Part shown: in pieces, positions 2,386 to 30,661 of the stretch
Layout of the letters: each line of letters begins with the position of its first letter
Position numbering within the stretch: position 1 is the first letter of the stretch
NCBI GenBank assembly: GCA_002269645.1
Contig: NIVC01004111.1
Span: 1-30,661 of the forward strand
Direction: 5' to 3'
Length of the DNA: 30,661 nucleotides
Source of the DNA: Macrostomum lignano
Lineage: Eukaryota
Notes under the pieces: generated by a model
What the model saw: only the letters and a program-made list of their open reading frames with translations
What the model was told of the DNA's origin: nothing
Database searches by the model: none
Program-made: the position numbers and the translations under genes

Positions 2386-2461
2386 TCTATACAATAGGGC
2401 ATCAATCACCCAGCAGTGCCGTGCATGCAGTTCACTGCAACCCCCCCCTCGGCAACTCCAG

Positions 2462-2956: not shown

Positions 2957-3096
2957 GTCGGCCGCGCCTGGGGGACTCGAACTCGGGACCTTCTTTGACT
3001 TGGGGGTTGCTGGGTCTGCCGGTTTTTTGCTATTTTTCTTTGGTTACCCGGTATTGATATTCCTAAGCTTGCAGGGTGTTTTGTTGGGGTCTGTTT

Positions 3097-3586
3097 GGGT
3101 TACCGGTTGATTGGGTATTTACCTGGGTTACCGGTTGATTGGCTATTTACCTGGGTTACCGGTTGATTGGCTATTTACCTGGGTTACCAGTTGATTGGGT
3201 ATTTACCTGGGTTACCGGTTGATTGGGTATTTACATGGGTTACCGGTTGATCGGGTATTTACCTAGGTTACCGGTTGAATGGCTATTTACCTGGGTTACC
3301 GGTTAATTGGCTATTTACCTGGGTTACCGGTTGATTGGCTTTACCTGGGTTACCGGTTGATTGGCTATTTACCTAGGTTACCGGTTGATTGGGTATTTAC
3401 CTGGGTTACCGGTTGATTGGCTATTTACCTGGGTTACCGGTTGATTGGCTATTTACCTAGGTTACCGGTTGATTGGCTATTTACCTAGGTTACCGGTTGA
3501 TTGGGTATTTACCTGGGTTACCGGTTAATTGGGTATTTACCTGGGTTACCGGTTGATTGGGTATTTACCTGGGTTACCGGTTAATA
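3097..3586. repeat. 28-bp minisatellite (ttgggtatttacctgggttaccggttga) ~17 copies
   Basis: Tandem units with ggg/ggc and tgg/tag variants; probably within the DIC 3' UTR. Confidence 0.95.
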
Positions 3587-4271: not shown

Positions 4272-4960
4272 CTGACCTCTCTGTCCTCTCCTCTGACCTC
4301 TCTTTGTCCTCTCCTCTCTGACCTCCCTTCTCTGACCTCTCTTTGTCCTCTCCTCTCTGACCTCTCTGTCCTCTCCTCTGACCTCCCCTCTCTGACCTCT
4401 CTTTGCCCTCTCCTCTCTGACCTCCCCTCTCTGACCTCTCTTTGTCTTCTCCTCTGACCTCCCTCTGACCTCTCTTTGTCTTCTCCTCTGACCTCCCTCT
4501 GACCTCTCTTTGCCCTCTCCTCTCTGACCTCCCCTCTCTGACCTCTCTTTGTCTTCTCTGACCTCCCTCTGACCTCTCTTTGTCCTCTCCTCTCTTACCT
4601 CCCCTCTCTGACCTCTCTTTGTCCTCTCCCCTCTGACCTCCCCTCTCTGAACTCTCTTTGTCCTCTCCTCTCTGACCTCCCTTCTCTGACCTCTGTCCTC
4701 TCCTCTGTGACCTCCCCTGTGACCTTCCCTTTCTGATCTCCCCTCTCTGACCTCTCTTCTCTGACCTATCCTCTCTGACCTCTTCTGACCTCTTCTGTCT
4801 GACCCCTCCCCTCTGACCTTTCCCCTCTGACCTCCCCTATTTGACCTTCTCTCTGACCTACCCCCCTCTGACCTCCCATTTCATCCCTTCTGACCTCCCC
4901 CCTGCCGTCCCATCTGTGACTTCACCCTTTTTGACCCCTCTCTCACCCACAATCTCAGAC
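4272..4960. repeat. Pyrimidine-rich compound minisatellite (ctctgacctc-based)
   Basis: Alternating ctctgacctctctttgtcctctc and ctctgacctccc units, degenerating towards 4960. Confidence 0.92.
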
Positions 4961-5457: not shown

Positions 5458-5613
5458 TCACGGCTTGAGTCCGGCCGAGCACTTGCAGCCCTCGATGGCG
5501 TACAGAGTCAGCTGCATGCTGCCGCCGTCCGTGCAGGCCGCCGTGATGGCCGGCTTGGCCCGGTAGCCCGTCGGGTTGCAGCAGGAGCACTCGCCCATCA
5601 CCTTCACCGTGCC
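5458..5613 (-). CDS. Terminal exon: second half of CTCK domain and stop codon
   Basis: ctgcag|GGC; hand translation [54 protein letters not shown]. This matches the VWF/mucin CK pattern CxCCxP...C.dG...CxC. Confidence 0.88.
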   Translation of the reverse strand, partial: GTVKVMGECSCCNPTGYRAKPAITAACTDGGSMQLTLYAIEGCKCSAGLKP

Positions 5614-6660
5614 CTGCAGTGGTGCAGTGGGGCAGCTGTGCGATTCACTGGATTCCTGCTGGTGCCTCTCCGATCAGTGCCTGAGAATCTGCCTCCCCGA
5701 TCAGTGCCTGAGAATCTGCCTCCCCGATCAGTGCCTGAGAATCTGCCTCTCCCTCAGTGCCTGAGAATCTGCCTCTCCGCTCTCCCTCAGTGCCTGAGAA
5801 TCTGCCTCTCCGCTCTCCCTCAGTGCCTGAGAATCTGCCTCTCCGCTCTCCCTCAGTGCCTGAGAATCTGCCTCTCCCTCAGTGACTGAGAATCTGTCTC
5901 CCTCAGTGCCTGAGAATCTGCCTCTCCGCTCTCCCTCAGTGCCTGAGAATCTGCCTCTCCGCTCTCCCTCAGTGCCTGAGAATCTGCCTCTCCCTCAGTG
6001 ACTGAGAATCTGCCTCTCCTTCAGTGCTTGAGAATCTGCCTCTCCCTCAGCCTGAGAATCTGCCTCTCCTTCAGTGCCTGAGAATCTGCCTCTCTTAGGC
6101 ACTGCCCATTAGGCTACCCACATCAAGGCTCGGACTCACCTGCTCAGTGACGTGCACAGAGTTGCTACCCGGACAGGCGCCTACGCACCGGTCGATGCTG
6201 ACTGGGGTAGCGAACCGGCAGAAGCGGCCGTTTGGACGTTTGGCCTCCCTCAGCAACGTGCTGCCCCTGGCGCAGGCCCGCAGGCTGGCCCGGTAGCAGC
6301 AGCCGGACTTGTCCATCACCCGCTGCGCCTCGGATCCGGCGGTGCCGGCCTGCACCTCGTCGGACAGCGTGCAGGGCGGCACCTCGGAGAGTTCGAGCGG
6401 CTGTGTTGACAACTGGCCATGAAGGCAAAGCCGCTTGCTGCAGTTGGCCCGGTCCACGTCCACACGGCCGCTGGGCCAGGCGACGCCGTTCACCTGTTAG
6501 TCAGTTAGTTAGTTAGTTAGTCATCTAGTTAGCTATTTAGCTATTTAGCTAGGTTAGTTAGTTAGTTAGTTAGCTTGTTAGTTAGTTAGTTAGTTAGTCA
6601 GTCAGTCATCTAGTTAGCTATTTAGCTATTTAGCTAGGTTAGTTAGTTAGTTAGTTAGTC

Positions 6661-6702
<42 letters not shown>

Positions 6703-6837
6703 CTTGTTAGTTAGTTAGTTAGTCAGTTAAGCTAGTTAGTTAGTTAGTCAGTTAGTTAGTTAGCTAGTTAGCTAGTTAGTTAGTTAGTTAGCTTGTTAGT
6801 TAGTCAGTTAGTTAGTTAGCTAGTTAGCTAGTTAGTC

Positions 6838-6883
<46 letters not shown>

Positions 6884-9800
6884 CTAGTTAGCTAGTTAGC
6901 CCACAACCGCCGCCGCCCGCCGCTCACCTGGCAGGCGAAGCAGTCCTGGATGCTGACGCAGCTGCCGTTGGCGTTCCTGGCCATGCCCGGCTTGCACTGG
7001 CAACCCGGCTGGCAGTTGGACTGCGGCTGCGCGAGCTCCGGGTTCAGCAGCTGGGCGCAGGTGGTCTCGCATCGGCCGGTGTCCACGTACGCGTCATTGG
7101 GGTTGCAGCAGGCACCCTCGTCGCCGAAGCAGTCGGTGACGCGGCTGGTCGGCCCGACGCACTCGGCACCGCCGTTGGCAGCTGGGGTTGCGATGGATCT
7201 GAGGGGAGGTCGGGTCCAGAGTTCAGTGTCTAATAATGGCTCTCTGTCCAGGGTTCAGTGTCTAATAATGGCTCTCTGTCCAGGGTTCAGTGTCCACTGG
7301 CTGTTGGTCACAGGGTCTGAGGCGTATCCAGAGCCAGTCTCTACGAATTTACCTGGTCCAGGTCTGCTTGCCGGAGCCGCAGGTGACGTTGCAGCCGCCA
7401 ACTTTCTGCCAAGCCGACCAGACACAGTCCTGGGCGCAGCTCTTCTCCTCGCAGACGAACTGGCCGCTGACGCAGGTGCACTTGTTGCAGGCCTTGTTCA
7501 CCACCGAGCCCGGCGGCATCAGGCGGCTCGCGTTCTCCGGATGCTCGCAGCTGCACTCGGCCACCGCCACGCAGGTGTCGGCCTCCCTGACCTTGTCTCC
7601 AGCGCAGCCGCAGCCCTGCATGCAGCCGACGTCCTGGCACTGCTTGTTGGCGCGCACATCAGAGCAAGTTCGCCAGCACTTGGTGGCGCAGCTGATGAGA
7701 GTCTCTGGGCCGGAGCAGACGGTCTCGTTGCAGGGCATCAGCACGGGCTCGAACTCGTGGTCTCGACACGCCTGGCCTCCGTTGGCCGCCGGCCGCAGCA
7801 CTGGCCGGGTTCTCTCCCGCTCGCCAACGCCGCAGCTGGGATTGCAGCCGGTGCCGACGCAGTTCTTGACTCGCTCGCTCCAGGCGGACCACTGGCCTAC
7901 CAGACAGTCCACTTTGCACTGCTTGCTGCACGGAACAACTTCGTAAGTTGACGGACAGGCCTTGCCACCGTTGGCCGCCTGTCTGGTGATCTGGCGGAGC
8001 CGCAGCTGTTGGCCGGTGGCGGTGGGGTTGACGCCGTCACAGTTGGCATAGCAGGTGCCGTTAGTCCAGTCGGAGACTTGGCAGTCGACTGGTGGGGCGC
8101 AATCCTGCCGGTTGCAGGACTGCTGATCGGCGTCCATGCGGCCCCTGGCGTCCGGAGCGCAGCTGCGCGTGTCGTTGACGCACAGGCGGACGCAGGCGCG
8201 GCTCCGGCGCTTGGTGCCCGTGCCGCACGGCGCGCTGCAGGCTGAGAATTCCGACCAATCAGACCACTGCGGCGCCGGATTCGACGCGTCGTCTGGGCGT
8301 TTCGGCATGCACTCGGGCCTGCCGGTGAAGTAGCTGCAGTAGCAGATCTCGCAGGGGTTCTCGGAGGGCATGGTTTCGCCAGGCGGCACCCGGTTGCCGA
8401 AGCGGTCCAAGCAGCCTGGGCAGCGGCCCGTATTGCATGGCTCTGACTCAGAGGCGAGGCCAACGCAGGCTCGACCGGTGCCGCGACGGCTGGTAGCCTG
8501 GGCCCGGGTTCGAGTCCTTGAGCCGCCGTCGCAGGCCTTCGAGCAGGGCTCCCAGTCTGACCAGGGTCCCCAGGTGCAGTCGCAGTTTTTTGTTGGCACG
8601 CAGGTGGCAACGCCGTTGACGCAGCGGCCCTGCGAGCAGAGGCCGCAGCTCAGGGTGGTCAGGTCGCAGGTGCACTGGTCCGGCTTCACGCAGGCCCGGG
8701 CTTTCTCGTCGAACACGAAGCCTTGCTCGCAGAAGCAGCCAGTTGAGCAGGCCAGCTGGTCTGAACAGGTCTCGTTAGTGACATGACCACAGGTGTAAGG
8801 GCAGGACGTGGTGCTGCACTGTCGCATCACCTTGCCCTCGGAGCAGCTTGGCGAAGTAGTGGTCGAGCCGCACGGATGAACGTTGCACAGGGCTGTCTCG
8901 GTGGTTGCGTCCTCTAGCAGGCAGTCGCCCTGGGGCGTCCTCGTCCGGGTCTTTACTCCGCCGTTGCAGGTCTGAGAGCAGTCGGACCAGGCAGACCACT
9001 GACTCCACACGCACGGACATCTCTGAGTGTTGCACAGCTCAAATTCCTGAATAATTGAACAATTCAAAGAATTAGTTCAGAACACACGACTGTTTTATCT
9101 ACAATAAGCTAGCGGCTTCAACTATAGCACCGGTCTGTACTGAATAAGACGGATCTCACGTCGACTAAGGCTTCAGATAGAATGAAACTGTCTTCGAATA
9201 TGTCTTCAGAGATTAGCAGTTAATAACGGGAATGTCTAAACAGCCTGTAAAGTAGCCAGGGAGACTGGTGCGAAATCTCCCCTATATTTGGCTAGTCAGA
9301 CAAACTATCGATTGCTAACGGAGCTCGGCTCCATTCCGTTGTAGGAACGGATTTTGGACACAGCTTACCTGGAAGTCTTTAGGCTGACACGGCTCGCCGC
9401 CGAACCGAGCAGGAGAAGCGACGGTGCGATTTCTGTACCGAACACCGGTGCCGCAGGTCGATGAGCAGGAGCCCCACGGCTTCCACTGGCCCCACTGACA
9501 ATCGTTCGAGCAGTTCGTCTTACTGCACCGGAGAGCGCCATTGCTGCAGCTGCACTGGCCGCAGTCTATCCGAATAACCACACCAGACTCCAGCATGTCA
9601 CCTTCATTAATCTTTTCTAAAGGAGAGGACAAACCTGAGGTGCCGTCCAACTCAACCCAAACGTCTCTTGGATAAGACTCAGACAACTGCAACTCCTTGG
9701 AGACTTCGCTCATAGCCACCATGCACTCGCAGTCACCGCGAGCAAGACATGGAGGAGGAGTCGCTAAAAAACGGTTTTCAAATAATTAGAATTCGTATGT

Positions 9801-12800
9801 TTAGCACTATCAAGAACAAAATAATAATATAAAACAAATACTCACTCGGCTCAATCATCACACATGTAGGTGTGCCTGAAATCCCAGGAGAAGTGGTTAC
9901 TGACGTCGATATTGAAGTCGACAAAGTAGTTGTCGAAGTAGATGTTGTGGTTGTAGACGACGGTGGAGTTGTGGTTGTTGATGTTGGTGTCGTAGTAGTC
10001 GTTGCAGATGTTGTGTTTAGTGTCGTATACGGGGTTGTTGTCGACGGCGGTGTCGTGGTCGTTGCCGTCGAAGTTGGTGTTGTAGTTGTCGTCGACGAAG
10101 TAGGTGTTGTAGTTGTCGTCGTCGAAGTTGGTTTTGTAGTTGTTGTCGAACTTGGAGTTGTAGATGTCGAAGCCGCTGTGGTTGTTGTCGATGTTGGTGT
10201 AGTAGTTGTGGTCGACGGCGGCGTTGTTGTAGTCGACGTCGAGGTTGTGGTCGACGTTGTGGGTGTTGTAGTTGTCGTCGTCGAAGTAGGTGTTGTAGTT
10301 GTCGTCGTCGATGTCGATGTCGGTGTTGTAGTTGTTGTTGAAGGCGTTGTGGTTGTTGTCGACGTTGGTGTAGTGGTTGTGGTCGACGGCGGCGTTGTCG
10401 TAGTCGACGTCGAGGTTGTGGTCGTCGAAGTTGGTGTTGTAGTAGTCGTCGTCGAAGTAGGTGTTGTAGTTGTCGTCGTCGAAGTAGGTGTTGTAGTAGT
10501 CGTCGTCGAAGTCGGTGTTGTAGTTGTCGTCGTCGAAGTAGGTGTTTTAGTTGTCGTCGTCGAAGGAGGTGTTGTAGTTGTCGTCGTCGATGTTGGTGTT
10601 GTAGTTGTTGTTGAAGGCGTTGTGGTTGTTGTCGACGTTGGTGTAGTAGTTGTGGTCGACGGCGGCGTTGTCGTAGTCGACGTCGAGGTTGTGGTTGTTG
10701 TCGAAGTCGGCGTTGTAGTTGTCATCGTCGAAGTAGGTGTTGTAGTTGTCGTCGTCGAAGTAGGTGTTGTAGTTGTCGTCGTCGAAGTCGGTGTTGTAGT
10801 TGTCGTCGTCGAAGTCGGTGTTGTAGTTGTCGTCGTCGAAGGAGGTGTTGTAGTTGTCGTCGTCGATGTTGGTGTTGTAGTTGTTGTTGAAGGCGTTGTG
10901 GTTGTTGTCGACGTTGGCGTAGTGGTTGTGGTCGACGGCGGCGTAGTTGTGGTTGATGTGGATGTTGTCGTAGACGTCGACGTCGACGTCGACGTTGATG
11001 TTGTGGTCGAAAGTCTTGTGTAACATCCTAGCATGCTTACCTGAACATTGACCGGAAGGTTGTTCGTATTGATGAAGTTGAACTTGATTCTGATTCTGTT
11101 TGTCTGTAGACCAAGGCCGCCGATTGAGGCACACTCGATAAAGTTATTGCTACACGTGGCCACGTCCTCAGCACTGTTGGCAGATTTTACTAATGTGAAG
11201 GTTGCAGCAACGCCAGACGATTTATACAGCTGGATTGACGTAATCAATCCTGGAGTGCTTGAAATGATGCTGAGCTTTCCAATAATCGACTGACTGCCGT
11301 CGTCGCCACTGACATTGAAGTCAAAGGAAATGCTTTCATCTTTGCGGGTTACTGAAGGTGCGCGGTTGACATCAAGACCACTCGTCGACGGACGAAGGAG
11401 GTTCAACTCGCTTTGCGCAATGAGTCCAACACCTTGAGTGGAAGCACTCACAGAGATGTCGCTCAACCCAATTGGACCATTGTTCGCCATGCCGTCTTCC
11501 TCAATGCAACGCTGCGGCAAGGAGGTGCTCTTTGCAAGAATGTTCTCTGTAGTCGTGGTTGTCGAAGGCGGCGTAGTAGTCGTCGACGGCGATGTCGTGG
11601 TGGTCGACGTCGAGGTTGTCGTCGTTGGTGCTGTGGTCGTTGTTGAGCTTGAGGTTGTCGTTGTTGATGATGGTGTCGTAGTTGTTGTAGACGGTGGAGT
11701 TGTGGTCGTCGACGTCGAGGTCGTTGTTGTTGTAGGTGTTGTTGTCGTCGATGTAGGCGTTGTAGTTGTCGACGTTGGCGTAGTCGTAGTCGACGTAGGC
11801 GTAGTTGTAGTCGACGTTGGCGTTGTGGTTGTCGATGTTGAGGTCGTAGTTGTAGACGGAGGTGTTGTAGTTGTCGTCGTCGATGTTGGTGTTGTAGTTG
11901 TTGTTGAAGGCGTTGTGGTTGTTGTCGACGTTGGTGTAGTGGTTGTGGTCGACGGCGGCGTTGTCGTAGTCGACGTCGAGGTTGTGGTCGTCGAAGTTGG
12001 TGTTGTAGTAGCTGTCGTCGAAGTTGGTGTTGTAGTTGTTGAAGCCGTTGTGGTTGTTGTTGACGACGGAGTGGTGGTAGTTGTTGAAGGCGTTGTTGTG
12101 GTTGTTGACGTTGGAGTGGTAGTCGTCGATGTGGGCGTGGTCGTTGTCGCCGGTGAAGTTGTGGAGCCTTGCTTGAAACATCCATATATTCCAACTTGGA
12201 GGTCGATGCTGTTTTTGTCAGTTACAGATGTGTAGAAGACCTCGAATCGAAGCATTTTCGACACAATAGAGACTGTACTAAGGCACACCATTAGGTCTGA
12301 CTTGCAGCTCGTGAGATTGCTGCCAGAGAAATAGTAAGTGTCCCAATTTGGTTGAGAAAGCGTCGGCTTGTTGTACACTCGAACGGCTGTTACTTCGGGG
12401 GCTGTAAACCTCAGCTCAATTCGTCCAATCTCTACTCCGCTGGTCGATTCAGCTGCAGGGTTCACTTCAATTAGAATGTTCTCATTTGGATTACTAAAAG
12501 ATGTGGCCGTTGGCCGGTTCAAATTAAATGGGACTGGTGATGACAGGCGCAACTTTTCTAAATCAGAAGCCGTGTATCCAGACTGTGTTCCACCGATTAC
12601 TTGAATATTCGATGGTGAGATGATGAATGGGTTCGAAAGTCCATCAATTTCAATACAAACACGCGGCACTGTAGTAGTGGAAGGCGTTGTAGTACTAGTC
12701 GACGTCGACGTTGTCGTGGTTGTTGGTGTAGTGGTCGTAGTTGATGGTGTCGTAGTTGTCGTCGACGGCGGTGTCGTGGTCGTAGAAGGCGTTGTGGTTG

Positions 12801-15800
12801 TTGTCGACGTTGGTGTAGTAGTTGTGGTCGACGGCGGCGTTGTCGTAGTCGACGTCGAAGTTGGTGTTGTAGTAGTCGTCGTCGAAGTCGGTGTTGTAGT
12901 TGTCGTCGTCGAAGGAGGTGTTGTAGTTGTTGTCGTCGAAGTAGGTGTTGTAGTTGTCGTCGTCGATGTCGATGTCGGTGTTGTAGTTGTTGTTGAAGGC
13001 GTTGTGGTTGTTGTCGACGTTGGTGTAGTAGTTGTGGTCGACGGCGGCGTTGTCGTAGTCGACGTCGAGGTTGTGGTTGTTGTCGAAGTCGGCGTTGTAG
13101 TTGTCATCGTCGAAGTAGGTGTTGTAGTTGTCGTCGTCGAAGTAGGTGTTGTAGTTGTCGTCGTCGAAGTCGGTGTTGTAGTTGTCGTCGTCGAAGTCGG
13201 TGTTGTAGTTGTCGTCGTCGAAGGAGGTGTTGTAGTTGTCGTCGTCGATGTTGGTGTTGTAGTTGTTGTTGAAGGCGTTGTGGTTGTTGTCGACGTTGGC
13301 GTAGTGGTTGTGGTCGACGGCGGCGTAGTTGTGGTTGATGTGGATGTTGTCGTAGACGTCGACGTCGACGTCGACGTTGATGTTGTGGTCGAAAGTCTTG
13401 TGTAACATCCTAGCATGCTTACCTGAACATTGACCGGAAGGTTGTTCGTATTGATGAAGTTGAACTTGATTCTGATTCTGTTTGTCTGTAGACCAAGGCC
13501 GCCGATTGAGGCACACTCGATAAAGTTATTGCTACACGTGGCCACGTCCTCAGCACTGTTGGCAGATTTTACTAATGTGAAGGTTGCAGCAACGCCAGAC
13601 GATTTATACAGCTGGATTGACGTAATCAATCCTGGAGTGCTTGAAATGATGCTGAGCTTTCCAATAATCGACTGACTGCCGTCGTCGCCACTGACATTGA
13701 AGTCAAAGGAAATGCTTTCATCTTTGCGGGTTACTGAAGGTGCGCGGTTGACATCAAGACCACTCGTCGACGGACGAAGGAGGTTCAACTCGCTTTGCGC
13801 AATGAGTCCAACACCTTGAGTGGAAGCACTCACAGAGATGTCGCTCAACCCAATTGGACCATTGTTCGCCATGCCGTCTTCCTCAATGCAACGCTGCGGC
13901 AAGGAGGTGCTCTTTGCAAGAATGTTCTCTGTAGTCGTGGTTGTCGAAGGCGGCGTAGTAGTCGTCGACGGCGATGTCGTGGTGGTCGACGTCGAGGTTG
14001 TCGTCGTTGGTGCTGTGGTCGTTGTTGAGCTTGAGGTTGTCGTTGTTGATGATGGTGTCGTAGTTGTTGTAGACGGTGGAGTTGTGGTCGTCGACGTCGA
14101 GGTCGTTGTTGTTGTAGGTGTTGTTGTCGTCGATGTAGGCGTTGTAGTTGTCGACGTTGGCGTAGTCGTAGTCGACGTTGGCGTAGTTGTAGTCGACGTT
14201 GGCGTTGTGGTTGTCGATGTTGAGGTCGTAGTTGTAGAAGGAGGTGTTGTAGTTGTCGTCGTCGATGTAGGCGTTGTAGTTGTCGACGTTGGCGTAGTTG
14301 TAGTCGACGTTGGCGTTGTGGTTGTCGATGTTGAGGTCGTAGTTGTAGAAGGAGGTGTTGTAGTTGTCGTCGTCGATGTTGGTGTTGTAGTTGTTGTTGA
14401 AGGCGTTGTGGTTGTTGTCGACGTTGGTGTAGTGGTTGTGGTCGACGGCGGCGTTGTCGTAGTCGACGTCGAGGTTGTGGTCGTCGAAGTTGGTGTTGTA
14501 GTAGCTGTCGTCGAAGTTGGTGTTGTAGTTGTTGAAGCCGTTGTGGTTGTTGTTGACGACGGAGTGGTGGTAGTTGTTGAAGGCGTTGTTGTGGTTGTTG
14601 ACGTTGGAGTGGTAGTCGTCGATGTGGGCGTGGTCGTTGTCGCCGGTGAAGTTGTGGAGCCTTGCTTGAAACATCCATATATTCCAATTTGGAGGTCGAT
14701 GCTGTTTTTGTCAGTTACAGATGTGTAGAAGACCTCGAATCGAAGCATTTTCGACACAATAGAGACTGTACTAAGGCACACCATTAGGTCTGACTTGCAG
14801 TTCGTGAGATTGCTGCCAGAGAAATAGTAAGTGTCCCAATTTGGTTGAGAAAGCGTCGGCTTGTTGTACACTCGAACGGCTGTTACTTCGGGGGCTGTAA
14901 ACCTCAGCTCAATTCGTCCAATCTCTACTCCGCTGGTCGATTCAGCTGCAGGGTTCACTTCAATTAGAATGTTCTCATTTGGATTACTAAAAGATGTGGC
15001 CGTTGGCCGGTTCAAATTAAATGGGACTGGTGATGACAGGCGCAACTTTTCTAAATCAGAAGCCGTGTATCCAGACTGTGTTCCACCGATTACTTGAATA
15101 TTCGATGGTGAGATGATGAATGGGTTCGAAAGTCCATCAATTTCAATACAAACACGCGGCACTGTAGTAGTGGAAGGCGTTGTAGTACTAGTCGACGTCG
15201 ACGTTGTCGTGGTTGTTGGTGTAGTGGTCGTAGTTGATGGTGTCGTAGTTGTCGTCGACGGCGGTGTCGTGGTCGTAGAAGGCGTTGTGGTTGTTGTCGA
15301 CGTTGGTGTAGTAGTTGTGGTCGACGGCGGCGTTGTCGTAGTCGACGTCGAAGTTGGTGTTGTAGTAGTCGTCGTCGAAGTCGGTGTTGTAGTTGTCGTC
15401 GTCGAAGGAGGTGTTGTAGTTGTCGTCGTCGAAGTAGGTGTTGTAGTTGTCGTCGTCGATGTTGGTGTTGTAGTTGTTGTTGAAGGCGTTGTGGTTGTTG
15501 TCGACGTTGGTGTAGTAGTTGTGGTCGACGGCGGCGTTGTCGTAGTCGACGTCGAGGTTGTGGTTGTTGTCGAAGTAGGTGTTGTAGTAGTCGTCGTCGA
15601 AGTCGGTGTTGTAGTTGTCGTCGTCGAAGAAGGTGTTGTAGTTGTCGTCGTCGAAGTCGGTGTTGTAGTTGTCGTCGTCGAAGTAGGTGTTTTAGTTGTC
15701 GTCGTCGAAGGAGGTGTTGTAGTTGTCATCGTCGATGTTGGTGTTGTAGTTGTTGTTGAAGGCGTTGTGGTTGTTGTCGACGTTGGCGTAGTGGTTGTGG

Positions 15801-21800: not shown

Positions 21801-24800
21801 TCTGATTCTGTTTGTCTGTAGACCAAGGCCGCCGATTGAGGCACACTCGATAAAGTTATTGCTACACGTGGCCACGTCCTCAGCACTGTTGGCAGATTTT
21901 ACTAATGTGAAGGTTGCAGCAACGCCAGACGATTTATACAGCTGGATTGACGTAATCAATCCTGGAGTGCTTGAAATGATGCTGAGCTTTCCAATAATCG
22001 ACTGACTGCCGTCGTCGCCACTGACATTGAAGTCAAAGGAAATGCTTTCATCTTTGCGGGTTACTGAAGGTGCGCGGTTGACATCAAGACCACTCGTCGA
22101 CGGACGAAGGAGGTTCAACTCGCTTTGCGCAATGAGTCCAACACCTTGAGTGGAAGCACTCACAGAGATGTCGCTCAACCCAATTGGACCATTGTTCGCC
22201 ATGCCGTCTTCCTCAATGCAACGCTGCGGCAAGGAGGTGCTCTTTGCAAGAATGTTCTCTGTAGTCGTGGTTGTCGAAGGCGGCGTAGTAGTCGTCGACG
22301 GCGATGTCGTGGTGGTCGACGTCGAGGTTGTCGTCGTTGGTGCTGTGGTCGTTGTTGAGCTTGAGGTTGTCGTTGTTGATGATGGTGTCGTAGTTGTTGT
22401 AGACGGTGGAGTTGTGGTCGTCGACGTCGAGGTCGTTGTTGTTGTAGGTGTTGTTGTCGTCGATGTAGGCGTTGTAGTTGTCGACGTTGGCGTAGTCGTA
22501 GTCGACGTAGGCGTAGTTGTAGTCGACGTTGGCGTTGTGGTTGTCGATGTTGAGGTCGTAGTTGTAGACGGAGGTGTTGTAGTTGTCGTCGTCGATGTTG
22601 GTGTTGTAGTTGTTGTTGAAGGCGTTGTGGTTGTTGTCGACGTTGGTGTAGTGGTTGTGGTCGACGGCGGCGTTGTCGTAGTCGACGTCGAGGTTGTGGT
22701 CGTCGAAGTTGGTGTTGTAGTAGCTGTCGTCGAAGTTGGTGTTGTAGTTGTTGAAGCCGTTGTGGTTGTTGTTGACGACGGAGTGGTGGTAGTTGTTGAA
22801 GGCGTTGTTGTGGTTGTTGACGTTGGAGTGGTAGTCGTCGATGTGGGCGTGGTCGTTGTCGCCGGTGAAGTTGTGGAGCCTTGCTTGAAACATCCATATA
22901 TTCCAATTTGGAGGTCGATGCTGTTTTTGTCAGTTACAGATGTGTAGAAGACCTCGAATCGAAGCATTTTCGACACAATAGAGACTGTACTAAGGCACAC
23001 CATTAGGTCTGACTTGCAGTTCGTGAGATTGCTGCCAGAGAAATAGTAAGTGTCCCAATTTGGTTGAGAAAGCGTCGGCTTGTTGTACACTCGAACGGCT
23101 GTTACTTCGGGGGCTGTAAACCTCAGCTCAATTCGTCCAATCTCTACTCCGCTGGTCGATTCAGCTGCAGGGTTCACTTCAATTAGAATGTTCTCATTTG
23201 GATTACTAAAAGATATGGCCGTTGGCCGGTTCAAATTAAATGGGACTGGTGATGACAGGCGCAACTTTTCTAAATCAGAAGCCGTGTATCCAGACTGTGT
23301 TCCACCGATTACTTGAATATTCGATGGTGAGATGATGAATGGGTTCGAAAGTCCATCAATTTCAATACAAACACGCGGCACTGTAGTAGTGGAAGGCGTT
23401 GTAGTACTAGTCGACGTCGACGTTGTCGTGGTTGTTGGTGTAGTGGTCGTAGTTGATGGTGTCGTAGTTGTCGTCGACGGCGGTGTCGTGGTCGTAGAAG
23501 GCGTTGTGGTTGCTGTCGACGTTGGTGTAGTAGTTGTGGTCGACGGCGGCGTTGTCGTAGTCGACGTCGAGGTTGTGGTCGTCGAAGTAGGTGTAGTAGT
23601 AGTCGTCGTCGAAGTCGGCGTTGTAGTTGTCATCGTCGAAGTAGGTGTTGTAGTTGTCGTCGTCGAAGTAGGTGTTGTAGTAGTCGTCGTCGAAGTCGGT
23701 GTTGTAGTTGTCGTCGTCGAAGTCGGTGTTGTAGTTGTCGTCGTCGAAGGAGGTGTTGTAGTTGTCGTCGTCGATGTTGGTGTTGTAGTTGTTGTTGAAG
23801 GCGTTGTGGTTGTTGTCGACGTTGGCGTAGTGGTTGTGGTCGACGGCGGCGTAGTTGTGGTTGATGTGGATGTTGTCGTAGACGTCGACGTCGACGTCGA
23901 CGTTGATGTTGTGGTCGAAAGTCTTGTGTAACATCCTAGCATGCTTACCTGAACATTGACCGGAAGGTTGTTCGTATTGATGAAGTTGAACTTGATTCTG
24001 ATTCTGTTTGTCTGTAGACCAAGGCCGCCGATTGAGGCACACTCGATAAAGTTATTGCTACACGTGGCCACGTCCTCAGCACTGTTGGCAGATTTTACTA
24101 ATGTGAAGGTTGCAGCAACGCCAGACGATTTATACAGCTGGATTGACGTAATCAATCCTGGAGTGCTTGAAATGATGCTGAGCTTTCCAATAATCGACTG
24201 ACTGCCGTCGTCGCCACTGACATTGAAGTCAAAGGAAATGCTTTCATCTTTGCGGGTTACTGAAGGTGCGCGGTTGACATCAAGACCACTCGTCGACGGA
24301 CGAAGGAGGTTCAACTCGCTTTGCGCAATGAGTCCAACACCTTGAGTGGAAGCACTCACAGAGATGTCGCTCAACCCAATTGGACCATTGTTCGCCATGC
24401 CGTCTTCCTCAATGCAACGCTGCGGCAAGGAGGTGCTCTTTGCAAGAATGTTCTCTGTAGTCGTGGTTGTCGAAGGCGGCGTAGTAGTCGTCGACGGCGA
24501 TGTCGTGGTGGTCGACGTCGAGGTTGTCGTCGTTGGTGCTGTGGTCGTTGTTGAGCTTGAGGTTGTCGTTGTTGATGATGGTGTCGTAGTTGTTGTAGAC
24601 GGTGGAGTTGTGGTCGTCGACGTCGAGGTCGTTGTTGTTGTAGGTGTTGTTGTCGTCGATGTAGGCGTTGTAGTTGTCGACGTTGGCGTAGTCGTAGTCG
24701 ACGTTGGCGTAGTTGTAGTCGACGTTGGCGTTGTGGTTGTCGATGTTGAGGTCGTAGTTGTAGACGGAGGTGTTGTAGTTGTCGTCGTCGATGTTGGTGT

Positions 24801-27800
24801 TGTAGTTGTTGTTGAAGGCGTTGTGGTTGTTGTCGACGTTGGTGTAGTGGTTGTGGTCGACGGCGGCGTTGTCGTAGTCGACGTCGAGGTTGTGGTCGTC
24901 GAAGTTGGTGTTGTAGTAGCTGTCGTCGAAGTTGGTGTTGTAGTTGTTGAAGCCGTTGTGGTTGTTGTTGACGACGGAGTGGTGGTAGTTGTTGAAGGCG
25001 TTGTTGTGGTTGTTGACGTTGGAGTGGTAGTCGTCGATGTGGGCGTGGTCGTTGTCGCCGGTGAAGTTGTGGAGCCTTGCTTGAAACATCCATATATTCC
25101 AATTTGGAGGTCGATGCTGTTTTTGTCAGTTACAGATGTGTAGAAGACCTCGAATCGAAGCATTTTCGACACAATAGAGACTGTACTAAGGCACACCATT
25201 AGGTCTGACTTGCAGTTCGTGAGATTGCTGCCAGAGAAATAGTAAGTGTCCCAATTTGGTTGAGAAAGCGTCGGCTTGTTGTACACTCGAACGGCTGTTA
25301 CTTCGGGGGCTGTAAACCTCAGCTCAATTCGTCCAATCTCTACTCCGCTGGTCGATTCAGCTGCAGGGTTCACTTCAATTAGAATGTTCTCATTTGGATT
25401 ACTAAAAGATGTGGCGTTGGCCGGTTCAAATTAAATGGGACTGGTGATGACAGGCGCAACTTTTCTAAATCAGAAGCCGTGTATCCAGACTGTGTTCCAC
25501 CGATTACTTGAATATTCGATGGTGAGATGATGAATGGGTTCGAAAGTCCATCAATTTCAATACAAACACGCGGCACTGTAGTAGTGGAAGGCGTTGTAGT
25601 ACTAGTCGACGTCGACGTTGTCGTGGTTGTTGGTGTAGTGGTCGTAGTTGATGGTGTCGTAGTTGTCGTCGACGGCGGTGTCGTGGTCGTAGAAGGCGTT
25701 GTGGTTGCTGTCGACGTTGGTGTAGTAGTTGTGGTCGACGGCGGCGTTGTCGTAGTCGACGTCGAGGTTGTGGTCGTCGAAGTAGGTGTAGTAGTAGTCG
25801 TCGTCGAAGTCGGCGTTGTAGTTGTCATCGTCGAAGTAGGTGTTGTAGTTGTCGTCGTCGAAGTAGGTGTTGTAGTTGTTGATGAAGGCGTTGTGGTTGT
25901 TGTCGACGTTGGTGTAGTAGTTGTGGTCGACGGCGGCGTTGTCGTAGTCGACGTCGTGGTTGTTGTCGACGTTTCGATAGTTTGATAGCACCCGAGTATT
26001 TGTAGTTTTATGTGCTGAGGCATTATATTAACAAAGGAAATCGTAATGGATATTTTCGTTGCCGTTAGTCCTTGGCCAGGTATTTTCGCGCATTGGATCA
26101 TGTCATTAAAGCAAGCTGTTATGCCTGATGTTTCAGTGGCGCTTACAATCAAATCTTCGGGTGATGAATTGTTGTAATTGGCTCTGAGCTCCACCTTTTT
26201 TATCAGTGACTTGGGTCCAACCTGGGCAATTTGCAGTGCACCTATTATCGAGGCACTTCCGTCGTCACCTGCAACGAAGAAATCCAGCTGAATGGACTCT
26301 GTCGTTGGTGTATTTGTATTGCCTGTGATTTGGAATCCAGTTCCTGCTTTGCTGAACCTTAGATCATCTAAACTGCGGTCGGCATACGAATTCACTCCGA
26401 GAGATGCGCTTCTAATGTACATTTCTTCCGTGGTGATTATGTTCGAATCTGCCATACCATCTTTTTCTACGCAACGAGGAGGCGTGGTCTCCGTCTTTGC
26501 TTTTACAAGTTCAGTTGTGGTGTACATTGTGGTTGGCGGCAGAGTTGTTGTTAGTTTTTCAAAGCAACCAAAGACCGAGAGCTTTAAGGACATGGTTGTT
26601 TCCTGCACGAATGAAAACGTCAGCCGAACTTCTTGCGCCGTCAACGGATTTGAATTGGCTGGCAAAGCGCAGTGCAGCAGATCCGGGAAGCATTTTCTGC
26701 TAGTGCTCGTCAAGTTAGCCAATTGTGTGTAGTCCGAATCCTCAGCTTTTTTAAATTCAACGACTATAAATGCAGTTGGAATGAAAAAGTCCGTCGATAT
26801 TAGCTCAAGCCGAGTCAACTGAGAGTTGATTTTAGTGTTTTGTGTCAGCGAGATTGTTAATGTCGCGTTCAGTCCCGTTGTGTTAAGAACAAAGTAGTCT
26901 GGTGAGACTGGCCGCAGGTCAGACTTCGGCTTCTTGGCTGACGAACTGGGATTCACTTTGATGTCCTCGTCTCTGATCACCGAGTCCGTCGCCATTCCAT
27001 CCTGTTCATCTGGCTCGCAAACTCGCACGATGCCGGTAGTTGTCGACGTAGTCGTTGTTGTTGTGGCTGCAATGCGCAAAGGTTAAAGGCAATTCTGTTG
27101 TTCTATTTTTACTAAAGCTTGAATAACCTATTTAGGTCAGAGGGAAAACTTTTAGAAGGCTGCTTTGACTGACAGCTGTTTGAAATTTGTTTAAATAGTT
27201 TTCGGATAAGTTCTCAACTTTTTACAGCAAATGCAAAAATGAAGTCACTTAATGGAGGGTTTGTCTACATACTCAGTACGAGTAAATCGTCTATATGCCA
27301 AGAAATAAGCTCGTACGAGACACAGCTTAAGATTGCCTATATGATTGAAATTCGTCAGTGTGATGCATTGAGCAGAAACTAAAGACAACGTACGGGCATA
27401 TCGAATTCCACTATATTCGATGCTAGCTATTGGTATGCTTCTACGACCGTACGATCATCGACAAAGAGAATATCTAAGGCTACGAAGAAGATACAAGGCA
27501 TACCCGCTACTACAAGACAGAGGCTGTCACAATATGATTTGCCAGCTTACACAAGCACGACGGAGGTTCATCTTCTCCGTTCCTGCACTCAACGATGCCA
27601 TCGCATACGTGGGCACAAATGCTGACACCAGCGGCATTTAGACAGCGAACGTTGTCCCCGGTGCACGGTGTGGTGACTGTCGTTGCAGAAGTCGTTGTTG
27701 GTGTCGTTGTTGTCGTTGTCGATGTCGAAAAAGACGTTGTAGTTGGCGATGTTGTTGTTGTTGACGATGTGATAGTGGTAGACGTCGGCTTAGTAGTTGT

Positions 27801-30391
27801 GGTCGACGGCGGCGTTGTTGTAGTCGACGTTGAGGCTGTCGTCGTCGATGTTGGCGTAGTGGTTGTGGTCGACGGCGGCGTAGTTGTGGTTGATGTGGAT
27901 GTTGTCGTAGACGTCGACGTCGACGTCGACGTTGATGTTGTGGTCGAAAGTCTTGTGTAACATCCTAGCATGCTTACCTGAACATTGACCGGAAGGTTGT
28001 TCGTATTGATGAAGTTGAACTTGATTCTGATTCTGTTTGTCTGTAGACCAAGGCCGCCGATTGAGGCACACTCGATAAAGTTATTGCTACACGTGGCCAC
28101 GTCCTCAGCACTGTTGGCAGATTTTACTAATGTGAAGGTTGCAGCAACGCCAGACGATTTATACAGCTGGATTGACGTAATCAATCCTGGAGTGCTTGAA
28201 ATGATGCTGAGCTTTCCAATAATCGACTGACTGCCGTCGTCGCCACTGACATTGAAGTCAAAGGAAATGCTTTCATCTTTGCGGGTTACTGAAGGTGCGC
28301 GGTTGACATCAAGACCACTCGTCGACGGACGAAGGAGGTTCAACTCGCTTTGCGCAATGAGTCCAACATCTTGAGTGGAAGCACTCACAGAGATGTCGCT
28401 CAACCCAATTGGACCATTGTTCGCCATGCCGTCTTCCTCAATGCAACGCTGCGGCAAGGAGGTGCTCTTTGCAAGAATGTTCTCTGTAGTCGTGGTTGTC
28501 GAAGGCGGCGTAGTAGTCGTCGACGGCGATGTCGTGGTGGTCGACGTCGAGGTTGTCGTCGTTGGTGCTGTGGTCGTTGTTGAGCTTGAGGTTGTCGTTG
28601 TTGATGATGGTGTCGTAGTTGTTGTAGACGATGGAGTTGTGGTCGTCGACGTCGAAGTCGTCGTTGTTGTAGGTGTTGTTGTCGTTGTCGATGTTGATGT
28701 TGATGTTGACGTTGTTGTAGATGTCGGCGTAGTTGTTGTAGTTGTCGTAGATGTTGTTGTGCAAGACTGTTCATCGGTTCCGTCCTTCATTTCGTTTGGC
28801 GGAAAAGTTTTTTTATATGATTAATTCAATTTTATTTATTAATATTTGAGCAGGTTCAGCTAAAACAAAATTTAAAATTTTTTACTCACTTCGCAATCGC
28901 GATTTCCGTCGCAGAGTTGTGTCACATTGATGCACTTGCACTGATCGCATATAACAGTGTCCTTTTCCATGCAGAGGCATTCTAAATGTAAGATTGATTA
29001 GTTTCCAAGTTTAAATTAAAAAGTCGCTAGTTTTTGCGATTTTGACTTTCTGAGCTTACTGCAGCCAATTTCGTCGCTGCCGTCTCCACAGTCGTCGTGG
29101 CCATCGCAGTGGTTGACTCGTGGAATGCACTTGGTTTCTGTGGTGTCTGCTGCCCCACATTTGAACTCAGACACTTCGTCGCACTCTGCCAGGTGGAAAA
29201 TAAGCAGTTTTATGAATGAAGTCGATTAGCGACTTTTATAAAAGTTTTCAAATTTTAAACAATTTCCATAAAATATTTCTCACTCTTGCAGTCGTCTTCG
29301 TCAGTCGTGTCGGGCAGTCCACAGTCGTAGACTCCGTCGCATCGTTTCTGCTTTGGCAGGCATTTGCCGGTTTTGTTGCATTGAATCTCAGTTGGATTGC
29401 AACCTGCAATGAGATGCGGTTTAGCATTCGAGTCCTAAGTATGCGTAAAATATATTCTCGGTTCATTATTGTAATAAAACTTTAAAATCAATATGCAAAT
29501 GGGGGATTCTTCAGTTCGTCTGGTCTCACCGCAGTTTAACTCGTCCGAACCGTCCGTGCACTGAGGAATGCCGTCGCATTTGAGAGACATGGCCACGCAC
29601 TGCTGCGTTGTGATGCAGCGGAAGTACGACGGCGAGCAGGTTGTGTCTGCGGGTTGAGTTCGGGTGCTCTGGCTTGTTTTTCGCCCCGCCACACTATCAG
29701 ATCCTTAGGTTGGGCTGCCAGCCTTCCAGATTCTCAGTTACTGGGTCACCCTCCCGGAGTCAACGTCAGGCCACCGCCGCCCTCCCAGACCCTCATGACT
29801 CACATGACTCTCGCTACCCTTCCAGATCCTCAGTTTCTGGGTCACCGCCGGCCTACCAGGTCCTCAGTTGCTGGGCCAGCCTCCCAGATCCGAGTTACTG
29901 CATGGGCCAGGTTGAAGACCAGCTCGCAATGAGCTAGCTATACACAATCGCATGCTACTTACTGCAGTTCTTCTCGTCGTCTCCGTACAGACAGTCCAGA
30001 GTGCCGTCGCAGAACTGGCTGTAGCTGATGCACATCCCGGTCACATTGCACGCGTATTGGTTCTCAGTGCAAGTTGGCTTAGTCGGCCGGCACACTGAGC
30101 TGTCGCTAGTGCAGTTCATCACACCGCCTTTGGTGCAGCTGCAGGTTGAACAGCTGGTGGTATTGTGAATGACAGAACCTTTGGGGTACTCCTTGCCCTG
30201 GTAGAAGCAGGGACAGTTGTCACTGGGTATGCACTCATTGTCGTGCTCAACATAGCCGTTGGGGCAGGCGCAGCCCTCGATGCACTGGCTGTTGACGCAG
30301 TGGGGCTCCGGCTCCAGGCCGACATTGTGGCAGGTCTTGGCGCAGGGTGGCATGCAGGGCTGGTAGACGCGACCGCCAGTGCACATGATGG
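5458..30391 (-). CDS. Giant SCO-spondin-like / gel-forming mucin-like secreted glycoprotein (5' end outside window; 12 exons, ~7,400 aa in window after restoring two 1-nt deletions)
   Basis: I joined exons by hand using GT-AG sites and matching phases: 30391-29963, 29646-29530, 29403-29284, 29185-29060, 28981-28890, 28784-27551, 27066-9846, 9763-9369, 9046-7353, 7198-6928, 6493-6140, 5613-5458. The translation gives TIL, LDLa, PTS, discoidin-like, TSP1, VWC-like and CTCK motifs, as in the SCO-spondin/hemolectin/mucin/VWF superfamily. Confidence 0.9.
5665..6094. repeat. 26/33-bp intronic minisatellite (ccctcagtgcctgagaatctgcctct[ccgctct])
   Basis: About 14-15 tandem copies filling the last intron (5614-6139) of the mucin gene. 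Confidence 0.95.
6140..6493 (-). CDS. Exon: VWC-like remnant + first half of C-terminal cystine knot (CTCK)
   Basis: taacag|GTG ... CAG|gtgagt; ORF 6095..6493 containing ...[19 protein letters not shown] (CxGxC). Confidence 0.85.
6497..6899. repeat. (TTAG)n / (CTAA)n tetranucleotide microsatellite with TAGC/TCAG variants
   Basis: Fills almost all of intron 6494-6927. Confidence 0.97.
6928..7198 (-). CDS. Exon: end of TSP1 + TIL domain
   Basis: cctcag|A ... CAG|gtgagc; [24 protein letters not shown]...CETTC...[25 protein letters not shown]. Confidence 0.9.
7214..7294. repeat. 32-bp direct repeat x2.5 (gtccagggttcagtgtctaataatggctctct)
   Basis: Visible tandem copies inside intron 7199-7352. 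Confidence 0.9.
7353..9046 (-). CDS. Exon: TSP1 / TIL / VWC-like array
   Basis: attcag|GAA ... AG|gtaaat; ORF 7349..9067. Repeated WSxWSxC..C.G...R.R TSP1 motifs and two TIL domains ([10 protein letters not shown]..., [10 protein letters not shown]...). Confidence 0.93.
9369..9763 (-). CDS. Exon: RGD-containing Cys linker, VWC-like module, first TSP1 repeat
   Basis: tttttag|CG ... CAG|gtaagc; [20 protein letters not shown]...[18 protein letters not shown]...[25 protein letters not shown]. Confidence 0.9.
9846..27066 (-). CDS. Giant 17.2-kb mucin exon: PTS tracts with discoidin-like domains C, D, (A-B)x3, E, (A-B)x3
   Basis: Acceptor ttgcag|CC at 27067 and donor CCG A|gtgagt at 9845. It spans ORFs 25379..27079, 18723..25373 and 9778..18726. 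Length 17,221 + 2 restored nt = 17,223, a multiple of 3, matching phase 1-1. Confidence 0.85.
10200..17530 (-). repeat. Coding macro-repeat block 2: (A-PTS-B-PTS) x3, periods 2,487 and 2,382 bp
   Basis: Anchors at 15917, 13430 and 11048; the length differences come from extra PTS subunits. Confidence 0.95.
18900..25570 (-). repeat. Coding macro-repeat block 1: (A-PTS-B-PTS) x3, exact 2,196-bp period
   Basis: Shadow ORF anchors at 23956, 21760 and 19564 (and 24346, 22150, 19954) are exactly 2,196 nt apart. Confidence 0.95.
27551..28784 (-). CDS. Exon: end of LDLa, PTS tract, discoidin-like domain B0, PTS tract, LDLa-like domain
   Basis: ORF 27510..28790. Donor TTG T|gtaagc at 27550. Ends CTGDNVRC...[17 protein letters not shown]. 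The acceptor is an AAG at 28786-28785. Confidence 0.85.
28890..28981 (-). CDS. Exon: N-terminal part of an LDLa domain
   Basis: atttag|AA ... GAA|gtgagt; [30 protein letters not shown], completed by DGTDEQSC in the next exon. Confidence 0.85.
29060..29185 (-). CDS. Exon: single LDLa domain (phase 1-1)
   Basis: tggcag|AG ... TGC A|gtaagc; hand translation [41 protein letters not shown]. Confidence 0.9.
29284..29403 (-). CDS. Exon: single LDLa domain (phase 1-1)
   Basis: ttgcag|GT ... AAG A|gtgaga; hand translation [39 protein letters not shown]. Confidence 0.88.
29530..29646 (-). CDS. Exon: single LDLa domain (phase 1-1)
   Basis: ccgcag|AC ... TGC G|gtgaga; encodes [38 protein letters not shown]. 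Confidence 0.9.
29695..29905. repeat. Degenerate ~33-bp intronic repeat (ccagatcctcagttnctgggtcacc...)
   Basis: Four to five diverged copies in intron 29647-29962. Confidence 0.55.
29963..30391 (-). CDS. Exon: TIL + VWC-like + LDL-receptor class A domain
   Basis: Acceptor gctgcag|CC and donor TGC A|gtaagt. TIL: [18 protein letters not shown]...[24 protein letters not shown]. Then [13 protein letters not shown] and LDLa CTENQYAC...[16 protein letters not shown]. Confidence 0.9.
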
Positions 30392-30661
30392 CTGCAGCAA
30401 TAGGGTTACAGTAATATGAAAATTGTAATAACTGCAATAAATTACCCCTGGTAGAAAGAGGATGTAACGCTAAATGCTGATTAACTTTATCAATTTCTCA
30501 CTTGTGGCTTCAAATATTCTCAGGATAACCAGAAAGGTATAGAGATTACTAATTAAATAATGTGCATGCGCAGAAGTTTTATAATCGCAAGGACATTGTT
30601 CCACTGGCAACACACTTTTCAGGTCTCTATGGGCTGAGAAGCTGTCAGGTGCTAACTGTTT

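Follow-up and report, generated by a model that had tools for sequence, protein, structure and literature searches.

The 3' 25 kb of a very large Macrostomum lignano gene that probably encodes a secreted SCO-spondin-type mucin with discoidin-like repeats

A 30,661-nucleotide stretch of Macrostomum lignano DNA (GenBank assembly GCA_002269645.1, contig NIVC01004111.1, positions 1 to 30,661; hereafter, the window) was shown to carry a mucin-like gene on the minus strand, running from 30391 to 5461 with its N-terminus at the high coordinates. This direction was assigned because every long stop-free stretch between 30.5 and 5.4 kb sits on the minus strand. Using the public N-terminal fragment UniRef A0A1I8GJ02 (hereafter P0110), the public C-terminal fragment P0003 and the relative P0001 as guides for splice-site location, twelve exons with canonical GT..AG junctions were located, across which the frame was kept throughout; about 5,700 codons were free of stops save for two 1-bp shifts. 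The stitched model comprised 7,397 amino acids (aa) inside the window, with Thr, Ser and Pro accounting for 34.8%, 13.9% and 8.4% of the residues, respectively. Its domain order was TIL, a VWC-like module, five LDLa domains, 16 Pro/Thr/Ser-rich (PTS) tracts alternating with 16 domains of about 160 aa, six to seven TSP1 domains, three TIL domains, VWC-like modules and a CTCK domain, with one weak LDLa interposed after the first of the 16 discoidin-like domains. An earlier interpretation made from the letters alone (hereafter, the sequence-only reading) had proposed these coordinates, a length of more than 7,400 aa and this domain order, all of which were borne out by the twelve-exon model. The exons, in the direction of the gene, are as follows:

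29963..30391, minus strand: exon 1 in the window, encoding a TIL domain, a VWC-like module and LDLa 1 (Pfam; 99% identity to P0110 residues 963-1105; donor GTAAGT)
29530..29646, minus strand: LDLa 2 (Pfam Ldl_recept_a, 47.1 bits; GT..AG junctions reproduce the P0110 sequence)
29284..29403, minus strand: LDLa 3 (Pfam, 31.8 bits; junctions)
29060..29185, minus strand: LDLa 4 (Pfam, 34.8 bits; junctions; a 20-residue mass spectrometry (MS) peptide from the footprint proteome treated below maps to this exon)
28890..28981, minus strand: first part of LDLa 5 (spliced LDLa 5, 26.6 bits; the sole in-frame GT..AG join found is 28890|28784)
27551..28784, minus strand: end of LDLa 5, PTS, discoidin-like domain A1 (28445-27957), PTS and a sixth, "stranded" LDLa (about 27670-27551) (translation; donor GTAAGC at 27551)
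9864..27066, minus strand: giant exon of about 17.2 kb with 15 discoidin-like domains alternating with PTS (stop-free segments, repeats, junctions, MS peptides)
9369..9763, minus strand: VWC/FnI-like cysteine module and TSP1 number 1 (Pfam TSP1_spondin, 46.2 bits; VWC, 19.8 bits)
7353..9046, minus strand: TSP1 numbers 2-7, the last of which runs into the next exon, two TIL domains and VWC-like modules (Pfam; 100% identity to BOX15_Mlig003285g1)
6928..7198, minus strand: end of the last TSP1 and the third C-terminal TIL (Pfam TIL, 33.4 bits; junction; MS peptide at the exon start)
6140..6493, minus strand: VWC-like module and first half of the CTCK domain (100% identity to P0003 residues 430-548; junctions)
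5461..5613, minus strand: last coding exon, with the second half of the CTCK domain followed by the stop codon (phmmer match to the VWF CK domain 4nt5; junction-spanning MS peptide)

An acceptor (...ctgcag) directly precedes exon 29963..30391, and 30392-30661 was assigned to an intron. A short open reading frame at 30661-30580 ("...VLPVEQCPCDYK") that resembles the end of a TIL domain was dropped, being absent from P0110 and located within this intron. The giant exon (27066-9864) has an alternative donor at 9846. Two introns of the C-terminal part, at 6496-6899 and 5663-6094, consist almost entirely of tandem repeats: one is (GTTA) x 100, and the intron splitting the CTCK domain is built from about 15 copies of a 26-33-base unit.

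Pfam searches supported the identity of both flanks. On the N-terminal side, a TIL domain (38.7 bits) and an LDLa (33 bits) were found in 30497-29958 and the second LDLa in 29704-29438, while the remaining three LDLa exons, the last of which is a domain split over two exons, passed the Pfam cutoff when scanned singly. The arrangement TIL-VWC-LDLa x5 read from the letters was thereby recovered, with the VWC-like module after the TIL remaining below the cutoff at 18 bits. The "stranded" LDLa, said to lie between PTS tracts, stood less firmly: its six-cysteine CDG...EDE pattern is present, yet it scored 19.5 bits (E 1.2e-3), which is below the Pfam cutoff. On the C-terminal side, TSP1_spondin gave 89.9 bits in five stretches and was found once more in exon 9763-9369, and the three TIL domains consisted of two stretches with 44.6 bits in exon 7353..9046 and the one in exon 6928..7198. 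The last 110 residues matched the VWF cystine-knot chain PDB 4nt5 in phmmer (E 5e-4), and Pfam gave no match for the CTCK domain. The predicted TSP1/TIL/VWC series ending in a CTCK domain was hence confirmed. Pfam detected neither VWD nor C8 in any segment downstream of the core. The gene therefore differs from the hemolectin/hemocytin type, a "3 + 2 VWD" layout in which two further VWD-C8-TIL units are expected after F5/8C.

The core between these flanks consists of the 16 PTS tracts, which total about 3,040 aa, and the 16 domains of about 160 aa between them. These domains are bounded by an invariant first and last cysteine (Cys6 and Cys167), with two more cysteines inside. In F5/8C domains, a disulfide links the first and last cysteine, end to end. 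Five sequence types with a mutual identity of only 19-40% were distinguished, of which type A occurs in seven copies, type B in six and types C', D and E in one copy each. Alternating A and B domains make up super-units of 2.2-2.5 kb with a DNA identity of 91-98%. Apart from A1, the domains lie in the giant exon at the following positions:

24416-23928, 22220-21732, 20024-19536, 16377-15889, 13890-13402 and 11508-11020, minus strand: type A
25564-25083 (frameshifted), 23369-22887, 21173-20691, 17526-17044, 15150-14668 and 12657-12175, minus strand: type B
27019-26561, 26473-25985 and 18594-18109, minus strand: single-copy types C', D and E, respectively, each with unique MS peptides

No Pfam match of any kind was obtained in the central segments, F5_F8_type_C (PF00754) being silent at E <= 0.01, and a profile of the five domain types retrieved no discoidin among PDB sequences at E <= 10. 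In contrast, AlphaFold (AF2) models of type A (predicted local distance difference test, pLDDT, 81.7; predicted template modelling score, pTM, 0.82) and type B (pLDDT 78.0, pTM 0.80) were both beta-sandwiches, and their best Foldseek matches in the PDB were almost all discoidin domains, namely those of neuropilin b1b2, CASPR2, DDR2, the FV/FVIII C domains and retinoschisin, with TM scores of 0.5-0.58. The best structural E-value was 2.4e-4 for type A and 1.6e-5 for type B, the latter with 15 matches at E <= 1e-3. As the sequence searches against Pfam and the PDB were negative and the fold comparison alone was positive, the repeat domains are described here as discoidin-like at the level of predicted fold only. 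Of the claim of discoidin-like repeats amid PTS, the 16 tracts and the predicted fold were thus upheld, and a sequence match in Pfam or the PDB was not obtained. CysD (Mucin2_WxxW) domains interrupting the PTS were not found; the interrupting domains are discoidin-type by predicted fold instead. The "stranded" LDLa comes right after the first discoidin-like domain, and in SCO-spondin an LDLa probably also adjoins F5/8C. An exhaustive hidden Markov model search of 1.84 billion representative proteins gave no match other than the known fragment of this gene and a single chiton protein. A word-indexed homolog search for the repeat domain returned nothing; this null is weak because none of the 142 listed matches exceeded about 1,016 aa, although the families concerned mostly comprise several thousand residues, and negatives of this search for giant proteins (ap2, SCO-spondin, full mucins) are not readable as absence.

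The gene extends beyond the window. P0110, a 1,680-residue M. lignano "VWFD domain-containing protein" found by domain profile, overlaps the first exons of the window at 99% identity; in Pfam it carries two VWD domains, C8 and TIL ahead of the LDLa exons, and it continues to domains A and C'. By this overlap, at least 960 further residues, with the VWD-C8-TIL assemblies that the sequence-only reading had expected upstream, are predicted to be encoded there. P0110 starts without a Met, and no EMI domain was seen in it by Pfam, the true N-terminus of the gene lying beyond both the window and P0110. At the other end, a C-terminal query retrieved the 100% identical M. lignano protein BOX15_Mlig003285g1 and further relatives of 85, 81 and 72% identity from transcriptome-like contigs.

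To relate the model to expressed protein, predicted tryptic peptides were looked up in the supplementary tables of a study of M. lignano adhesion, in which Dataset S2 is the footprint proteome (Wunderer et al., 2019; PMC6410801). Eleven peptides of Dataset S2 mapped exactly to the N-terminal and core parts, with matches in LDLa 4 as well as in the single-copy domains C', D and E; another 13 mapped exactly to the C-terminal part. Three of the latter supported splice junctions: the 12-residue peptide DFQ|EFELCNTQR spans junction 9369|9046, a 20-residue peptide containing TEQ|GTVK spans junction 6140|5613, and a 19-residue peptide (SIATP...) begins at the boundary of exon 6928..7198. The mapped peptides were distributed over three unconnected transcriptome entries. 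The first, of 2,625 residues and annotated "MUC5B / hemolectin-like", already extends from the VWD region through the LDLa cluster to domains A, C' and D; the second, of 738 residues, contains domains B and E; and the third, of 1,176 residues, has a sea-urchin SCO-spondin fragment as its best UniRef50 match in the published annotation. Since its peptides occur in the published footprint proteome, the protein is translated in its N-terminal, central and C-terminal parts and leaves the animal, in agreement with the secretion proposed earlier. Six Dataset S2 peptides of the 2,625-aa entry, for example TFDGLTFEYQGR and NNPNEQYCYSDDACLTK, mapped to neither the window nor P0110. More N-terminal sequence therefore exists than the window and P0110 contain, and it probably includes a third VWD domain in addition to the two in P0110, which is hinted at solely by the unmapped peptide TFDGLTFEYQGR. 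The window protein is undiscussed in that report (Wunderer et al., 2019), and a literature search gave nothing for the transcript id RNA815_290, nor any description of a Macrostomum mucin. A second "MUC5B/Hml-like" entry in Dataset S2, 2,969 aa long, has a different set of peptides and points to another mucin-like paralog in the footprints.

The same work described adhesion protein 2 of M. lignano (Mlig-ap2; GenBank MH586845 / QAX24810.1), a surface-binding glue protein of 14,794 residues with a core of 21 x 255 aa and 25 x 221 aa repeats, which had been split into four unconnected transcripts until the genome joined them (Wunderer et al., 2019; PMC6410801). In other Macrostomum species, ap2 carries one to five LDL domains with TIL ahead of them, and C8 in a 2021 domain map. 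The comparison with Mlig-ap2, suggested by the sequence-only reading, proved apt: both genes belong to the same species and share an N-terminal VWD, TIL, (C8) and then LDLa arrangement, a C-terminal TIL/TSP1 arrangement, a giant repetitive core, a transcriptome record in unconnected pieces and a presence in footprints. Their cores differ, that of ap2 being made of basic repeats and that of the window gene of acidic to neutral PTS with discoidin-like domains. Identity of the two was rejected. The ap2 epitopes TSRKSTGRTTRQKK (21 occurrences in ap2) and VNRETPKEPKKALS (26 occurrences), as well as short sub-strings of them, were absent from all six frames of the window, as were the ap2 MS peptides, and in the MS tables ap2 is a separate entry with unrelated peptides and an isoelectric point (pI) of about 10, as against 5.7 for the N-terminal entry of the window protein. 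With the ap2 epitopes absent, the gene did not turn out to be a plain ortholog of a described protein, the outcome against which the sequence-only reading had set its own proposal. Because the flank plan is common to both, the published domain maps suggest that the window gene is a paralog of ap2 with a different core.

On this evidence, we consider it probable that the window holds the 3' 25 kb of one very large M. lignano gene and that this gene gives rise to a mucin-type glycoprotein of about 8,500 aa, cysteine-rich and secreted, which is built on a SCO-spondin-type scaffold. We infer that the three parts lie on a single transcript and that the product has a role in mucus or adhesion. The core probably arose by tandem amplification of a discoidin-type module together with its PTS linker, giving 16 domains and 16 PTS tracts mostly within one 17-kb exon. 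If VWF, gel-forming mucins and SCO-spondin are taken as models, the CTCK domain would form disulfide-linked tail-to-tail dimers, and the N-terminal VWD assemblies could link these dimers head to head into polymers. The PTS tracts would likewise be expected to carry dense O-glycosylation, with which their composition is compatible, and to form stiff, extended hydrated rods. The regularly spaced discoidin-like domains occupy the sites of CysD in vertebrate mucins and may act as folded knots, as ligand-binding or non-covalent cross-linkers, or as binders of glycans, lipids or matrix. Possible partners of the TSP1/TIL tail are cell surfaces and other secreted proteins.

Several points weigh against this interpretation. 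Tubulin, myosin and other cellular proteins also occur in the footprint dataset, and presence in footprints is for that reason no proof of an adhesive role or of regulated secretion. The peptides could also stem from a near-identical copy, M. lignano having duplicated gene copies. Neither a signal peptide nor an EMI domain was seen in the available part, as neither the window nor P0110 reaches the true N-terminus. No long transcript unites the three parts, the public pieces measuring 599, 1,680, 738, 1,176 and 2,625 aa, and the two frameshifts, if real, would truncate the protein. Finally, the suggested paralogy with ap2 was read from published domain maps and not from an alignment.

The lack of a uniting transcript bears on the alternative that three separate genes or transcripts lie head to tail on the same strand, encoding a VWD/LDLa protein, a PTS/discoidin mucin and a TSP1/CTCK protein. 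It would account for the observation that every public model is a fragment, with BOX15_Mlig003285g1 starting at an internal Met and covering the last 599 aa only, and for the label "5UTR_CDS_3UTR" carried by the three transcriptome entries. We nevertheless regard such an arrangement as unlikely. In-frame GT..AG junctions connect all parts with no stop or plausible start between them, and the 2,625-aa transcript already crosses from the VWD region and the LDLa cluster into the core. Short-read assemblies collapse repeats of this kind, as illustrated by the four pieces of Mlig-ap2, and it would be unusual for a mucin core to lack polymerisation ends.

The frameshifts bear on a second alternative, that the locus is a decaying pseudogene or dead duplicate and that another, intact genomic copy is the source of the peptides. 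The reading frame of the giant exon is broken twice by 1-bp deletions, near 25411 and 18847:

25405..25415, minus strand: frameshift 1, in a type-B domain; a 1-bp deletion by direct DNA comparison (CCAACGGCCA in intact copies versus CCAACGCCA here)
18843..18851, minus strand: frameshift 2, in a PTS tract; a 1-bp shift, with the PTS reading changing frame at 18845-18849

Besides these breaks, the partial duplication of the M. lignano genome and the value above one in the "# Proteins" column for many peptides in the MS tables speak for such an origin. However, past the two shifts the sequence can be read on in the new frame over 2,200 and 3,000 codons, and its domains are intact, which fits very recent events or sequencing errors and not decay, and single-base deletions are a typical error of long-read assembly. 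Moreover, single-copy domain E, which lies downstream of both shifts, has peptides in the footprint proteome that match the window exactly. Because the frames remain open with intact domains and the domain E peptides were detected, the two deletions were interpreted as assembly errors or very recent lesions in one of several copies, probably the former, and a dead locus appears improbable.

Having set these alternatives aside, we return to the single large gene and its SCO-spondin-type scaffold. Among the matches listed, none of which exceeded about 1,000 aa, the best named match spanning VWD and LDLa was "SCO-spondin [Octopus bimaculoides]"; the SCO-spondin affinity thus derives from best matches of about 1,000 aa or shorter. 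Chick SCO-spondin (Q2PC93) has 3 VWD, 13 LDLrA, 1 FA5/8C, 12 TIL, 27 TSR, 7 VWC and 1 CTCK. Vertebrate SCO-spondin resembles the window gene in that its VWD-C8-TIL assemblies precede an LDLa cluster, and in having a discoidin domain, alternating TSP1/TIL/VWC modules and a terminal CTCK domain. Each of these features was recognized: two VWD domains in P0110 are followed by five LDLa in the window, the mid-protein discoidin domain is present by predicted fold in 16 copies instead of one, and the TSP1 series with TIL/VWC ends in a CTCK domain, though it is far shorter than in the chick. In content and broad order, the SCO-spondin-type scaffold originally proposed accordingly held, with Octopus SCO-spondin and a sea-urchin SCO-spondin fragment as the best named matches. 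The differences are that SCO-spondin has no large PTS and a single FA5/8C, where the window gene has PTS of about 3,000 aa and discoidin-type domains in 16 copies; that the chick protein has 27 TSR and 13 LDLrA, against 6-7 TSP1 and 6 LDLa; and that the EMI and EGF-like domains of SCO-spondin were not seen in the available part of the window gene. A plain flatworm SCO-spondin ortholog, acting in the nervous system as a matricellular factor or extracellular fibre and not as a mucus or adhesive component, would agree with the domain content, the broad order and the names of the best matches, but is highly improbable given a core foreign to described SCO-spondins, the short TSP1 series, the lack of a visible EMI in the available upstream part, the origin of the peptides in material that worms leave on glass and the function of ap2, a second gene with the same flanks, as a glue protein.

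The mucin side of the architecture was also recognizable: large PTS, encoded here mostly in a 17.2-kb exon and flanked by VWD assemblies and VWC/CTCK, is an arrangement of the gel-forming mucins (MUC2/5AC/5B/6/19). Invertebrate gel-forming mucin-like proteins were reported to cluster nearest to SCO-spondins, with F5/8C characteristic of the lophotrochozoan ones (Lang et al., 2016; PMC4948705). These lophotrochozoan proteins and hemolectin share VWD-C8-TIL, F5/8C, PTS and CTCK with the window gene. The described type, however, has "3 + 2 VWD", F5/8C in mid-protein and CysD inserts, whereas the window gene has no VWD after the core, no CysD, a discoidin-type domain too diverged for Pfam and repeated 16 times, and LDLa and TSP1 in addition. 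In limpet pedal mucus, P-vulgata_3 has VWD x3, C8 x2, TIL x2 and LDLa x5, and P-vulgata_6, with TSP1 x4 and a cystine knot, aligns with Mlig-ap2; both occur in the adhesive mucus and were called SCO-spondin-like (Kang et al., 2020; PMC7333891). Compared by domain description, the two limpet proteins mirror the two ends of the window gene, but they were reported as separate proteins with no core described, whereas here the ends belong to one predicted gene with a core.

Homology of the core itself could be followed only faintly outside Macrostomum. The chiton protein mentioned above, Liolophura sinensis "mucin-2-like" XP_064614628.1, was the only non-Macrostomum match of the domain profile and similarly alternates PTS with a cysteine-bounded domain of about 150 aa beginning C-x-LEDGM. 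With an E of 2.6e-4 and an hhalign probability of 37% across the first 78 columns, the resemblance is weak, and orthology is therefore not claimed; searches of the chiton domain against the PDB and Pfam gave no link to discoidin. Each chiton domain has its own exon, whereas 15 of 16 lie in one giant exon in M. lignano. In the chiton region examined (CM072730.1, 28332459-28378680), at least 15 exons each contain one C-x-LEDGM domain with PTS exons between them, a canonical F5_F8_type_C exon (6276-6608 of the region) and a VWC exon (1835-2161) lie upstream, and two gene calls on the flanks, with 3,696 and 5,807 aa, may belong to the same gene. Meanwhile, a Logan contig (SRR23372229; 10,981 bases, GC 33%) encodes a VWD-TIL-VWD-C8-TIL-LDLa head that is 39% identical to the window gene, followed by PTS tracts alternating with cysteine-bounded segments. 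As these segments gave no match to the Macrostomum domain profile, conservation of the core outside Macrostomum is not supported by this contig.

The "hybrid" architecture announced by the sequence-only reading is thus present but less novel than stated: SCO-spondin-clustering mucins with F5/8C had already been reported (Lang et al., 2016; PMC4948705), as had the SCO-spondin-like halves in the limpet (PMC7333891). The concept being known, the window gene is an undescribed member, annotated in fragments, of the SCO-spondin-like invertebrate mucin group. What is new is an SSPO/ap2-type frame with an LDLa cluster and a TSP1 tail, no second VWD block, no CysD and 16 diverged discoidin-type domains alternating with PTS. 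It provides a concrete mapped example for the proposal, made in 2016, of a shared origin for SCO-spondin and the gel-forming mucins of invertebrates, and its relevance is mainly to the flatworm adhesion model and to mucin evolution. It also shows that such genes can be hidden by an annotation in fragments, as five public pieces, the longest of 2,625 aa, correspond to one gene of about 8,500 aa.

With regard to adhesion, an ap2-type scaffold would exist in at least two versions in one animal, one with a basic repeat core and the other with a classic mucin core with discoidin-type domains, and the mucin-core version was likewise recovered from footprints. The two versions would constitute a natural experiment on the polymer core, setting surface binding against hydration, lubrication or cross-linking. 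More tentatively, and with the balance of probability against it, the window protein might be an overlooked third giant structural glycoprotein of the temporary-adhesion/gliding secretion, a sister of ap2 produced by duplication of an ancestral SCO-spondin-like mucin and a core swap, in which a fast-evolving discoidin-type lectin module replaced the cross-linking role of CysD. If so, it would carry part of the O-glycan/PNA (peanut agglutinin)-type signal and of the mechanics now credited to ap1 and ap2 alone.

Outside the mucin gene, the window contains the last exon of a convergent neighbour gene (2354-2956, plus strand). By Pfam (WD40) and a phmmer match to PDB 9dgr_g (E 6.7e-41), this exon codes for the C-terminal WD40 region of cytoplasmic dynein 1 intermediate chain 2. 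Four minisatellite arrays, at 877-1096, 1511-2182, 3096-3582 and 4278-4875, fill the space between the two convergent genes; their units of 20, 20/59, 28 and about 14 bases, respectively, are present in 11-47 copies, with strong local GC and AT skew.

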